From Auanema rhodensis (lineage: Eukaryota; Animalia; Nematoda), in contig OZ059894.1 of NCBI GenBank assembly GCA_964057225.1, positions 14,632,001-14,696,000 of the forward strand: a stretch of DNA of 64,000 nt. Reading direction: 5' to 3'. Of the stretch, positions 25,284 to 63,500 are shown piece by piece. Numbering within the stretch: position 1 is the stretch's first letter; every line of letters begins with the position of its first letter. The translations under genes were made by a program, and so were the position numbers. Under the pieces are notes generated by a model. The model searched no databases. It was not told the DNA's origin and was given only the letters and a program-made list of their open reading frames with translations.

Positions 25284-25355
25284 TGGAGGTATGGGGAATC
25301 GAACCCCAGACTTCTCGCATGCAAAGCGAGCGCTCTACCCCTGAGCTATACCCCC
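25284..25355 (-). tRNA. tRNA-Ala (anticodon UGC)
   Basis: Reverse complement reads GGGGGTATAGCTCAGGGGTAGAGCGCTCGCTTTGCATGCGAGAAGTCTGGGGTTCGATTCCCCATACCTCCA: a 72-nt cloverleaf with G3:U70 Ala identity pair, TGC anticodon, intact A and B boxes, and a T4 terminator ~9 nt downstream (25275-25272). Confidence 0.98.
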
Positions 25356-57556: not shown

Positions 57557-60500
57557 ATGGCTCATTTAGTCGAAAATGGAACAGTTTTAGGTGACGGCTC
57601 TTGGAGCCTCCCAATTTTGATTACCGATATGAATATACAGAGGTACAGTTGAACACAAAGCACAAAGTTATTGTTATTATCTAAATTAGGAGTCTGTACG
57701 TAAGGGGAGATTTACATATTGGAGGTCTTATGCTGCGTCTTGTTCAGGAAGTCGGTCAGTAAATTATCTTACTGTTATAATTATTAAACATTAATAATCA
57801 ATATACATATATATATATATATCGATTATATTCTATTATCTATCATTTCCTAATCAATCTACTCATTTCGTTGAGAACCTATTAACTCATCATGTTTCTG
57901 CTATCAGTATAGAACATCTCATTATATATTTTTTTTAACCAAACCTCACATTCATTGCATAATTGCTTTTAAACAATATCCTTGAGAATCATCTCTTTGA
58001 TCGATTTAATGATTTCGATCCTTATATTCAATCTTTCATAGTTGCATTTTTTCGTGACTCTCAGCTGGTTTTCTGATTTCTTTCAAGGATAAACCGTAGA
58101 AGAAAGTTCTCGCTTTCCCATCCATTCATGGACACTTGACTATCTTCACAAATTTTCCCATAATATAAACATAAATATCTCTGGTTTCGAACCTAAAATA
58201 TTTTTTTTCTTTTAAAAAATACTTTCTTTTCACTATAAATATCAAATGGTTCAGTGAAATTCAAAATGTTTCGCTTTTCATATATACATTCTGTGGTTCT
58301 CTTCCCCTCTGATCAATGCTCTGTTCTCTGCCATTGGTTGGAAGGAAGGAAATCGAGGATGAGAATGTATGCTGGGAGGAGGAGAGGATAAAGGGGTAGT
58401 TGCTGCCGCCTACCCTTATTACACTGTTCATTCTAACCCCCTGTCTCTTTATAACTTTCTTTTAGCCACCCCCTCTTCCAGAGATTGAGAGGAAGGGTTG
58501 AAGGCAAAGATAAACAGGTTTAAATACTGAAGATAACGAGAGATCGAGAGATTCTAAGAGAGCTTCAATCTCACTAGAGCAATAAGATTTTTGTCTGAAG
58601 TTTTCATCTGTGTTCTATATTTTTGACACAGCCCTTCACTACAACCTTTCTTTCAAATCCAAAGCTCATCTATATAATCAAGTATAACAATAGCAAATCA
58701 TATAACCAAACGTTGGCATTTCTAAACAAATTCAAATCAAATGATGAGCATAATATCATAAAGGTTGATCAAATGGTAAAGTTCAAAAACGGGGAAGTAA
58801 TCGATGTGAATTCAATTGGCCATAGAGTCTAGGTTCACCAGACATTGAATCATAGGGGTCGCCGATCCTCACATATTTCTTTCTTCTCTTCTTTACCCTT
58901 TCAAAGTTTTTTTTATCCTACGACATCAACTAGTTTTTACTATTTTGGTAGCTATAGGAGGACAAAAGTGAAAAATCTTGACATAATCCTATTGATATCA
59001 TGATACTCTCTATATATATACCTGCATAACATACATCAAAAGAAAAACAACAGTTGAAAGTAATGCTTGAGAGATTGACTTATCTTCTTTAAAGGTCATG
59101 CTCTTTATACATGACAAACTATTTGATATCAAATAGTTGTTGTCATAGTAGTAGTAGTAGTAGTAATATTAGTTACTACTTTACTACTGTTGACAATGAT
59201 GATAAGATTGTAATAATACGAGCCAAAAGGATCATTTCTATCTATTCACTAGCATCCTCATATCATTCCATACAGTTATTGCTATTATCGATTACATTGA
59301 ATGTATGTCACATATTCTTATCTAGCGTATGCGATAAATGGAATGTTCATAACAACCTTGTACGTATAGCAGAAGGTACTCACATCCTTTACGATTTTGT
59401 TTCTATTGCTTCATAAATTTAAGCAAATCTAAAAATAAAAAAGATACATCTTTTATATTTTATATTATTATTTTGTAAATATGAGGATGATGATGATGAT
59501 GTTTTCTTTAATATTTAGCTTTGCTTTACCCCTTTTATTGATCACCTTATTTGTCTAAAGTATTGAAGTATACCTAGATTGGACCACAATCTTTATTTAT
59601 TTATATTGCTAGAGTAGAAGAAACGAATATAGAATACTAAGAATTAAGAGAAAGAGATAGAGAAAGAGAGGAGGGAATTTGAGAATGTAAAGGAACATCA
59701 AAGCTTTAGAATATAATGATCTAGAAAGGAACGGAAATTCATAGCTTTCTTTCTCTCTATCTCTCACCTTTCTTCCTTTCCTCTATTCTACCTTCTTCGT
59801 ATGTCATTAATCTGGTAATGGTAATGCATACGACCTGAGAAAAGAAGAACAAAAGTATCACACGATCATAAATATATTTTTTCTAAAGAAAGTATTAAAT
59901 CCTTTTTATTTTTTTGGGTCGAATAATAATTTGAATGATCAGTAATAGACCATTATGTATCCTTGTGAACATGGATGGTCAAATAACTACTTATGCTATT
60001 CACAAAATGTATGAAGCTTTTCATGTAACATCTGGCGTGACCAAAGACGAATAAGACAAGTACTGTTGATGAGCTAGCTTGCTAAATGCTTAGTTTGTGC
60101 AGAAAAAGGTTTTTCTCAAGATGGTTCAGTCACTAATCTTTTCATAAAATCTGAAAAATACATCAAATAATCTTAAATGACCTTCATTTTCTATCAAAAA
60201 CCAGTCGCTTGTGTATGAAAAGTTTATAAAAGGCTTGTTTTCGTAGTCAGAATATTAGTGTATTACGTTTTCTTCTTCTCTCTCTAGCTCTTATATATAA
60301 TATTAGTTGATAGACTTATATGCTCCAAAGCTCTGTAGTAGCCATCATGTTATAGTCTAACGCTAATTTGTCCCCAGACTCATAGATGATGAGCTATATG
60401 TTTCCCAGATTATATCATCAAATGAATGCCACAATTGCGCAGCTGCTACCCTGATCATAACTTGTACGAAATAAGCGCAGAATTTCCAAAGAAGCGATTT

Positions 60501-63500
60501 GTGCCTTACATGTCTATAAACTGAAACGATCAGCTGTAATAAAAATTTAAGAGCAACATCTTTACAGATATTTCCCGTGATTGGTCCGATCATGCATTAT
60601 GGTGGCCTGAAAAGCGTCGATGGCTACAGCATACTCGGTCAACATTGGACCAAAATGGTATCACTGCTGACAGTAAACTCGAATTTACTCCTATGCATAA
60701 GGATGTTAGGTATGATATTAAATAAATAAATAAAATATAAATCTAGATAAACCTGGTATGAGAACCGGTACGTTTAAACATAAACGTAAAGGGGTATTTC
60801 CAGGGAAATAATATGTCTAATAATCTTGTCACATTCGCGTTTATCAATTTGATATACGTGAGTACGAGAGCAGTAGCACATTTATAATATTATATTATTA
60901 TATAAAATTAAAATTTTAATAAATAAAACGAATGATACATACTTGGATTATAGAATTCAACTACCTGATCTTCAAATGATCGATGCCAGACTTGATTTTT
61001 CTGTCAATGTTGTGAGAGCCACTGGCAAACTTTGTCGAGATTTGGGACTACGACACGCTGAAGAACTTAGCTTGAAAAGGTACTTTTTCGTGAAATCCCT
61101 TTCAATATGATTTCATGTACTATTCTTTCCAGATATATTCCTCCAGACCAACTTAGAAAAGGAACTAATGATCCCGAAAATATGAGTGGCCCTGTGCCTA
61201 TCAGACCTGGAGAAGAATCTGTTGGTCCAATGACTCTGAGAAAAGCTACTCCAATCTTTGCTTCCCAATCGAACTTAGATAGACGTCGTCAACAGAGTCC
61301 CGCTCTCTCAACCTCTGGACATATATTCAATGCTCATGAAATGGGAACATTACCTCGCCATGGAACCCTGCCACGTGGAGCCAGTCCAAGTCCAGGAGCT
61401 GTAAGTATTTCTTGAAATTTAAAAATTGGAAAATGAGATAGAGATCTGGACGATTCCAACCTAAACAATAAAATACCAAGCCACATTTATTTATAAAAAT
61501 ATATTATTTACAGTACAACGGAACCATGGGTCGTGTTCCTATTATGCCTAGTGTCAGCTTCAGTGAAGGTATAGACCAGTTCATCAGCTTAATCATCAAT
61601 TTCTTATTTTTAGGCTTAGAAAGCGATCAGTTTGATATGGCTTTAGTACATTCTCCTCGTGTAGTAGCAACTAGAGATACACCTGTCTTCCGTCCTCAAA
61701 ATTATGTAGAAAAGGCTGCTCTTAACAGGGGATGGTTAGACTCTAGCAGATCATTGATGGAACAAGGAGTGTTTGAGGGCGATATCGTACTTCTTCGATT
61801 CAAATACATGTCATTCTATGATTTGAATCCTAAAGTATGAATCTTATTCGTATAATAATCCTAATTTCAAATATTACAGTATGATCCTGTACGTATTAAC
61901 CAACTTTACGAACAAGCTAAGTGGTCCATCCTTCTTGAAGAATTTGATCACACAGAAGAAGAAGCCACTCTGTTTGCTGCTCTTCAGGTATTTTTCCCTC
62001 ATATGTTCATTGTTCAAATTTTATATTTAGCTTCAAGCAACACTTCAACGAGATTCTCCAGAACCTGAAGGAAACGAAAAAGATGATGTAGACGTGATGT
62101 TGGATGAATTGGTACGAACTTGTTCAAATATTTTCAGACAATTGAATTTAAAAAATTAAGTCTATAATAGTTATTATGCGTTTTACAGGAGAAGAATTTG
62201 GATACAGCTGTAATCGGTGGACGTCATTCAGATTTGACACAAGTTCCTGAATTAGCTGATTATATCAAATACATGAAGTAAATTGTTTTTACTAGTTTAT
62301 TGATATAATTAATGAAATTTTAGACCTAAGAAGTTGGCTGCATTCAAAGGATTTAAGAGAGCTTTCTTCACCTTCCGTGATTTGTATTTGAGTTATCATC
62401 AAAGTTCTAGTGACATGAACTCTCCACCTCTTGGCCATTTTTCATTGAAAGGTAACAAAATCTTAAAGAAGAGAGATTTAATATTCTTAATAGGTTGCGA
62501 AGTCACTCCTGATGTTTCTGTATCTCAAGGCAAATATCATATCAAGTTACTTGTTCCAACCGCCGAAGGCATGACTGATTTTGTTCTCAAATGCGATACG
62601 GTATGTCATTGAAATCGAACAACAAATGTAATATTATATTTTTTCTAGGAATATCAATATGCTAGATGGATGGCTGCCTGTCGTTTGGCTTCTCGTGGAA
62701 AATCTATGGCTGATGCTTCTTACCAACAAGAAGTTGATAACATTAAGAGTCTTCTTCTTATGCAAGTAGTAAACGGACGTGAAAACAATGGTGCCAAGAA
62801 AGCTCAAGCAGTTAAATTGCCTTCTGACTTCAATGTTGACGAATATGTTTCATCTCGATATGTCAAACGTGCCCGAAGCAAGCAATCGGTATGTCAAGAG
62901 TCACAAATATTTCACTAAAACAATTGTTTTACAGCTACAACAAAGAATTTCTGATGCTCATAGTAATGTGCGACAACTAACATCGACGGATGCTAAGCTC
63001 CAATACATCAGGTATTAAACTTGTTTATGTGAACTTGAATTCATTGATATATAACAGAGCCTGGCAAGCGCTTCCGGAGCATGGATTACACTACTTTATT
63101 GTCCGTTTCCGAAACGGAAAGAAGAATGAACTTATTGGTATGTGTTAAGTTAATCTGATTAGGTTTCAACCAATAATATTTTAGGAGTAGCAACAAACCG
63201 TTTGGTTAAAATGAACATTGATAATGGAGAAAGTCTCAAAACATGGCGATTCACAAACATGAAGAAATGGCATGTTAACTGGGAGATTCGGCATTTGAAA
63301 GTTCAGTTCGAAGACGAAGATATCGAGTTCAAGCCTCTGTCAGCTGATTGCAAAGTATGTTTATCAAGTAATAATCAAAATAAAAAAAATATTTTGAGAT
63401 TGCTCACGAATTCATTGGAGGATATATATTCTTGTCGATGCGAAGCAAAGAACAGAATCAAACAATGAATGAAGAAATGTTCCATAAACTGACAGGAGGA

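Follow-up and report, generated by a model that had tools for sequence, protein, structure and literature searches.

The stretch of Auanema rhodensis DNA analyzed here (assembly GCA_964057225.1, contig OZ059894.1, positions 14,632,001 to 14,696,000; hereafter the window, 64,000 nucleotides (nt) long, whose own numbering is used throughout) carries the kindlin gene unc-112, and the third intron of this gene raises the question of whether its folded core encodes an RNA that guides modification of the U2 small nuclear RNA (snRNA). An initial annotation, made from the letters of the window, had proposed a guide RNA of the box H/ACA type for pseudouridylation of U2 at U41. Our analysis gives about an even chance that the core of kindlin intron 3 (approximately 60752-60883, plus strand) encodes a box H/ACA RNA that functions as a guide for this U2 uridine, and the broader claim, that the element is a genuine H/ACA RNA whatever its target, appears somewhat better than even. 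The guide interpretation is plausible and consistent in itself; it is unproven, and its novelty falls short of what the initial annotation claimed.

Fold, boxes and host of the intron 3 element

First, the composition and the fold of the element were examined. The GC content of the core was 37%, compared with 9.5% and 11.4% in the two flanks of the intron. Positions 60749-60883 folded into two hairpins with a minimum free energy (MFE) of -42.3 kcal/mol, while shuffled versions reached -23.2 +/- 3.5 kcal/mol (z -5.43), and none of 200 shuffles folded as well. Folding of the whole intron recovered the same two-hairpin structure; each hairpin was significant individually (z -3.0 and -3.7), and both intron flanks were unfolded. 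The hairpins were 53 and about 63 nt long and the hinge 8-10 nt, which follows the hairpin-hinge-hairpin-tail layout, about 120-160 nt in size, of H/ACA RNAs. The fold of the antisense strand was 10 kcal/mol weaker than that of the plus strand, which contains three G.U pairs, and this strand asymmetry, as G.U pairs would give, points to an RNA of the sense strand. The parts of the element were as follows.

60752-60883, plus strand: candidate H/ACA RNA, 132-nt core (fold, GC contrast and our own H/ACA scan)
60752-60804, plus strand: 5' hairpin, in which the basal stem CCUGG/CCAGG is followed by the pocket (an internal loop of 8x7 nt) and then by a 2+8-bp upper stem capped by the loop AACA (MFE -17.6 kcal/mol, z -3.0, 0/200 shuffles)
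60806-60813, plus strand: H-box hinge, AAAUAA (60806-60811) or the overlapping AUAAUA (60808-60813) (motif search; unpaired in the MFE structure)
60815-60877, plus strand: 3' hairpin with a 3-bp basal stem, a 4x4 loop, a 19-bp stem with a CAC bulge and the loop AUU (MFE -19.6 kcal/mol, z -3.7)
60878-60880, plus strand: ACA box immediately after the 3' hairpin (motif search; the 3' end of the RNA is assumed)

The basal stem of the 5' hairpin has 5 bp, and the AAAUAA H box sits 1 nt past this hairpin. The ANANNA motif is common in AT-rich sequence, which makes the H-box match weak evidence. The distance from the top of the 5' pocket to the H box was 13 nt for AAAUAA or 15 nt for AUAAUA; since the spacing rule for H/ACA pockets is 15 +/- 1 nt (PMC5733568), the 5' hairpin fits this rule. 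At the other end, the unconstrained MFE structure drew the ACA into the basal stem of the 3' hairpin, and forcing it to be single-stranded cost 2.9 kcal/mol. The sequence UGAG was found at two places only, 60759 within the pocket and 60859 within the stem of the 3' hairpin, so that the apical loops lack the Cajal-body (CAB) box of small Cajal body-specific RNAs (scaRNAs), and we give the missing box little weight for or against the proposal. The two-hairpin fold, the ANANNA hinge, the ACA, and the lack of a UGAG CAB box in the apical loops had been described in the initial annotation, and all of them were recovered here; the ends of the RNA, and with them the distance of 3 nt between the ACA and the end given in that annotation, are assumed.

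The 3' hairpin was less regular as a guide. Opening the 6-bp helix 60824-29/60864-69 below the CAC bulge puts the upper stem's base 14 nt from the ACA, and only with that helix open does the 3' hairpin obey the pocket-distance rule. In one mutant C. elegans guide, a stiff hairpin that lacked an obvious loop was still compatible with activity (PMC5733568). When the pocket strands of the 3' hairpin were checked by hand against the conserved U2 segment, no complementarity to the branch-site region was found, and there was no match to the U2 positions equivalent to vertebrate U39 and U37, the targets of a 3' pocket of the C50C3.14 type (a C. elegans guide discussed below). Taken by itself, the 3' hairpin is a near-perfect stem-loop of 60-70 nt, the size of a microRNA precursor, and microRNA-like RNAs are made from some H/ACA RNAs, including SCARNA15/ACA45. 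The intron could hold some other structured feature, either a microRNA-type precursor formed by the 3' hairpin or hairpins acting in cis on the splicing of kindlin. We consider this very improbable: the Rfam searches gave no microRNA family match to the 3' hairpin, the 5' hairpin, the placement of the boxes, the pocket geometry and the U2 match would be left unexplained, and a role in cis on splicing is not expected of an element that is absent in relatives.

The intron that would host the H/ACA RNA was also verified. Its position in the gene is given below.

60568-60709, plus strand: kindlin exon 3 (transcript contigs, ortholog and protein alignment)
60710-60953, plus strand: host intron 3 of kindlin/unc-112, 244 nt, GT..AG (contigs from three runs)
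60954-61079, plus strand: kindlin exon 4 (transcript contigs, ortholog and protein alignment)

The kindlin gene lies on the plus strand, with its start placed at 57566 by alignment to the closest kindlin protein, and the two exons flanking intron 3 encode kindlin sequence with 73-93% identity to nematode orthologs. Positions 60706 and 60951 were joined without a gap in transcript contigs from three runs, in which the next intron, of 53 nt, was skipped too; intron 3 is therefore real and spliced. Its GT..AG ends and the contigs bear out the length of 244 nt given by the initial annotation. The statement in the same annotation that most kindlin introns measure 42-53 nt was roughly right, the remaining introns being about 40-110 nt long in the closest-protein alignment, except that intron 2 is long as well. 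Intron 2 (57754-60567, about 2.8 kb) is by far the longest of the gene, and it yielded nothing from Rfam at the gathering threshold or from the H/ACA scan.

Predicted pairing of the 5' pocket with U2

The pocket was compared with the conserved segment of U2 around the branch-site recognition sequence, in human numbering. The letters of this segment, which we take from established knowledge, are the same as those used in the initial annotation. Two strands of the pocket paired with it.

60758-60764, plus strand: AUGAGAA, the guide strand on the pocket's 5' side, pairing with U2 nt 43-49 (7 bp, 1 G.U, directly under the upper stem)
60793-60798, plus strand: guide strand GGUAUU, 3' side of the pocket, pairing with U2 nt 35-40 (6 bp, 2 G.U; separated by 12 nt from the H box that begins at 60806, or by 14 nt from the alternative one)

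The total pairing was 13 bp with 3 G.U pairs and left U41-G42 unpaired, and this register was the sole one in which the pocket paired with the U2 segment over at least 8 bp. The guide bases are exactly the pocket strands left unpaired in the MFE structure, and the pairing abuts the upper stem on both sides. These strands, the count of base pairs, the free U41-G42 and the distance of 13-15 nt from the H box reproduce the pairing of the initial annotation in full. G60793 pairs with C40, which adjoins the target U41; a G-C pair beside the target ranks with the features that a pocket most needs in order to function (PMC5733568).

The uridine left free corresponds to a mapped pseudouridine of C. 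elegans U2. The pseudouridines (Psi) of C. elegans U2 lie at positions 10, 16, 28, 39, 41, 43, 45, 46 and 56, of which Psi43 corresponds to vertebrate position 41 and yeast position 42 (PMC1276797). RNA guides act on this U2 uridine in yeast, vertebrates and C. elegans (PMC5733568), and U2 is not a substrate of C. elegans Pus1p (PMC5473140). The proposed mechanism is as follows. After splicing, exonucleases would trim the intron to the part shielded by dyskerin, Nop10, Nhp2 and Gar1, and the pocket of the 5' hairpin would then bind U2 to either side of the U immediately after GUAGUAUC. That U (U41 in human, U43 in C. elegans and U42 in yeast numbering) and the next G would stay unpaired just below the upper stem, in the position at which dyskerin would convert the U to pseudouridine, while the 3' hairpin would supply the ACA box and stability to the ribonucleoprotein.

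A real H/ACA RNA might instead have a target other than U2, namely rRNA or another RNA, or be an orphan, with the 13-bp match to U2 arising by coincidence. In random target sets of 6.2 kb, with 16 registers allowed, 13 bp with at most 3 G.U was reached in 7.8% of trials; the window contains no rRNA or other snRNA genes for comparison, and the 3' hairpin clearly has another target or none. A mixed guide of this kind has a precedent, as yeast snR81 joins a U2 pocket with an rRNA pocket. However, the match uses the one canonical register and falls on a uridine that belongs to the small number of known pseudouridylation sites, and it has the G-C pair beside the target that functional pockets require (PMC5733568). 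Because restriction to the single canonical register would lower the value of 7.8%, and because no more than a few per cent of all uridines carry this modification, we roughly estimate that the joint chance of a canonical-register match on a pseudouridylated U would be below 1%. We regard a target other than U2 as quite improbable, and U2 as the preferred target of the 5' pocket.

Chance controls, related nematodes and flanking repeats

To place the element against chance, a detector for H/ACA RNAs was written, which looked for an ACA, an ANANNA 50-80 nt upstream, and a single hairpin on each side with energies of at most -15 and -12 kcal/mol. On both strands of the window (128 kb) it gave one match only, at 60752-60883, with a total of -38.5 kcal/mol; with relaxed cut-offs, the next best match in the real window reached -25.9 kcal/mol. 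Dinucleotide-shuffled windows served as the chance control, and bare H/ACA architecture proved not to be rare in them. When a pocket at 13-16 nt from the box was also required, 18 shuffled windows gave 1 match, at -27.2 kcal/mol. On the strength of this pocket filter, together with the compositional island and the strand asymmetry, we take the structure to be real and not accidental.

Several results weigh against a functional U2 guide. The detector without the pocket filter found 18 architecture matches in 26 shuffled windows (about 0.7 per 128 kb), one of them at -38.4 kcal/mol. The element had no Rfam match, either in a search of the whole window at the gathering threshold or in searches of segments of 601 nt and 146 nt at E values up to 10. 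The loci of seven relatives contained no ortholog, and hence there was no support from covariation or conservation. The 4x4 loop of the 3' hairpin lies 8 nt from the ACA, too close for a pocket, and the basal stem of this hairpin has just 3-4 bp when the ACA is held single-stranded. The guide arms are weak singly (-3.8 and -1.7 kcal/mol), and their pairing was computed on the universally conserved U2 segment, not on the U2 gene of this species. The transcript contigs hold spliced mRNA only and are uninformative on a small non-polyadenylated RNA. Finally, if the element was inserted recently, it could be a dead retrocopy.

The search of Rfam and the comparison of the same intron in related nematodes had both been proposed by the initial annotation as checks on its claim, and neither lent it support. 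No H/ACA family, including SCARNA15, SCARNA4 and snR81, was matched in Rfam by the 601-nt or 146-nt segment even at E values up to 10. For the second check, kindlin orthologs were found by single-exon searches, and seven loci were compared at the position of intron 3.

Teladorsagia circumcincta (L001): intron of 58 nt
Close relative (L003, Logan contig): intron of 42 nt
C. remanei (L005) and C. angaria (L006): intron absent
C. auriculariae (L007): intron of 192 nt, unstructured, z -0.27
Diploscapter pachys (L004): intron of at least 186 nt, unstructured, z +0.31, followed by an assembly gap
Mesorhabditis belari (L002): intron of about 385 nt, mostly a 41-nt tandem repeat

The homologous intron was thus short, absent or unrelated in all seven relatives. 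None of the seven loci showed similar sequence or a U2-type pocket there, and Rfam found no snoRNA (small nucleolar RNA) in them. The element is lineage-specific at this site, as far as the compared sequences indicate.

The relatives also provided observations on the intron itself and on their own loci. The intron position is empty in C. remanei (L005 3406-3410) and C. angaria (L006 2365-2369), and the intron is present in C. auriculariae, Diploscapter, Mesorhabditis, Teladorsagia and the Auanema rhodensis window; from this patchy presence, intron 3 was lost or gained within the group. In Diploscapter pachys, a run of N (L004 3537-3746) replaces kindlin exon 4 together with the last part of the homologous intron, so that the comparison with this species covered the earlier part of the intron only. 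The homologous intron of M. belari holds 6.4 copies of the 41-nt repeat and then 2.8 copies of a 20-nt repeat (L002 4900-5160). The same M. belari locus contains a 485-nt fragment of large subunit (LSU) rRNA on the minus strand (L002 3609-4093; Rfam 260 bits, model positions 1456-1888), which lies inside the called unc-112 range, upstream of the exon 3 match; it may have been inserted from rDNA, or it may be an artefact of the assembly.

The sequence on either side of the A. rhodensis element was then analyzed, and an AT-rich direct repeat of 41 nt was found to border it exactly.

60711-60751, plus strand: upstream copy of the 41-nt AT-rich direct repeat, ending exactly at the first base of the element (31/41 identical to 60883-60923)
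60883-60923, plus strand: downstream copy, beginning exactly at the last base of the element (31/41 identical to 60711-60751)

None of 5000 mononucleotide shuffles equalled the score of this repeat, and among 231 AT-rich segments taken from the window itself, just one did. Removal of the element and of one repeat copy would leave an intron of about 72 nt, near the size of the neighbouring introns. The repeats resemble the product of an insertion with target duplication, and suggest one, although the low complexity of the sequence makes this uncertain. The element probably arrived in intron 3 recently, in this lineage, as an inserted copy. Nested snoRNA genes in Caenorhabditis undergo slow birth and death (PMC3342880), and the insertion picture fits this pattern. 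A more specific scenario, in which a mature-length copy of an H/ACA guide (from the first base of the 5' stem to 2-3 nt after the ACA) was recently inserted, with a target duplication of 41 nt, into an ordinary intron about 72 nt long and is now expressed from its new host, is in our view improbable as a whole. If true, it would be a case of RNA-mediated snoRNA relocation in a nematode caught in the act.

The main rival to a functional guide is an inert insertion, in which a dead H/ACA copy or another structured fragment is spliced out with the intron and degraded, with no role on U2. The direct repeats that flank the element exactly, in the manner of a target duplication, and the absence of the element from this position in all seven relatives speak for it; the transcript contigs give no RNA support for the element, and the basal stem of the 3' hairpin is weak. 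In addition, human copies derived from H/ACA RNAs are reported to be mostly retrogenes (PMC1802619). However, the hairpins, the boxes and the pocket are all intact with no decay seen, the guide strands have kept their canonical-register match to U2, and the element lies in sense orientation in the spliced intron of an expressed host, which is all that an intronic H/ACA RNA needs for expression. We judge the inert insertion unlikely, and a working U2 guide remains the preferred reading.

Two other candidates were tried and rejected. Telomerase RNA was dismissed because no template complementary to the nematode telomere repeat was seen, and a transposon or miniature inverted-repeat transposable element was dismissed because no terminal inverted repeats surround the element and no other copies of it were found within the window. 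Elsewhere in the window, a tRNA-Ala gene (anticodon UGC) was found at 25284-25355 on the minus strand, with an Rfam score of 69 bits and agreement from ARAGORN.

Comparison with known guides of U2

The initial annotation had compared the element with human SCARNA4 and yeast snR81, which is correct (PMC5733568), and had presented it as the nematode counterpart of these guides. Such a counterpart was not missing, since the C. elegans snoRNA C50C3.14 already guides this U2 position (PMC5733568). C50C3.14 is the ortholog of SCARNA15, and its ends have been mapped by rapid amplification of cDNA ends (RACE) (Deryusheva and Gall, 2018; PMC5733568). Tested in yeast, its 5' pocket guided the pseudouridine equivalent to C. 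elegans U43, while two pseudouridines nearby depended on its 3' pocket (PMC5733568). The A. rhodensis candidate was compared with C50C3.14 by description. Both are nematode box H/ACA RNAs with a 5' pocket aimed at the same U2 uridine (C. elegans U43). In contrast, the 3' pocket of C50C3.14 guides U2 Psi41 and Psi39 (C. elegans numbering), and the 3' hairpin described here has no such complementarity; C50C3.14 has been verified by RACE and by activity in yeast, whereas the Auanema candidate is known from sequence alone. To judge by its cosmid-based name, C50C3.14 presumably lies on cosmid C50C3, away from unc-112.

The integrin-adhesion gene kindlin had also been called an unusual host. Of 142 C. 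elegans snoRNAs, 111 lie within introns, distributed among 88 host genes (PMC3342880), so that an intron is the usual location. With snoRNAs spread over so many hosts, a non-ribosomal host is unremarkable, and the supposed oddity of kindlin disappears. Among the papers searched, none linked unc-112 with a snoRNA. The function is already known in nematodes, and the candidate is thus an ordinary new family member of low novelty. It would involve no new kind of mechanism; the flanking repeats are the one feature from which something new might be learned, on the movement of snoRNA genes. If real, the element adds one more guide to the short list of nematode guides for the modification of spliceosomal RNA, and offers a simple deletion target for studying the role of this U2 pseudouridine in worm splicing.

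Vertebrate SCARNA4 is a scaRNA of Cajal bodies with CAB boxes. SCARNA4 (ACA26) of human and Xenopus has been confirmed as the guide for vertebrate U2 position 41, and it restores this pseudouridine in an snr81 deletion strain (PMC5733568). The candidate resembles it as an H/ACA guide for the equivalent of vertebrate U41 (PMC5733568), but, unlike SCARNA4, it has apical loops (AACA and AUU) that contain no UGAG, and it gave no match to an Rfam SCARNA family at E values up to 10. Yeast snR81 is independently transcribed and not intronic; its U2 pocket is in the 5' hairpin, and its 3' hairpin acts on a non-U2 target (25S rRNA). It resembles the candidate in being an H/ACA guide for the equivalent U2 position, Psi42 (PMC5733568). 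Unlike snR81, the candidate is intronic, its 3' hairpin is an orphan, and it has no detectable sequence similarity to the yeast guide. If the candidate is real, nematode lineages can differ in the host gene that carries the guide for this U2 pseudouridine, itself deeply conserved, and the Auanema element could be redundant with the SCARNA15-type guide of C. elegans or could replace it.

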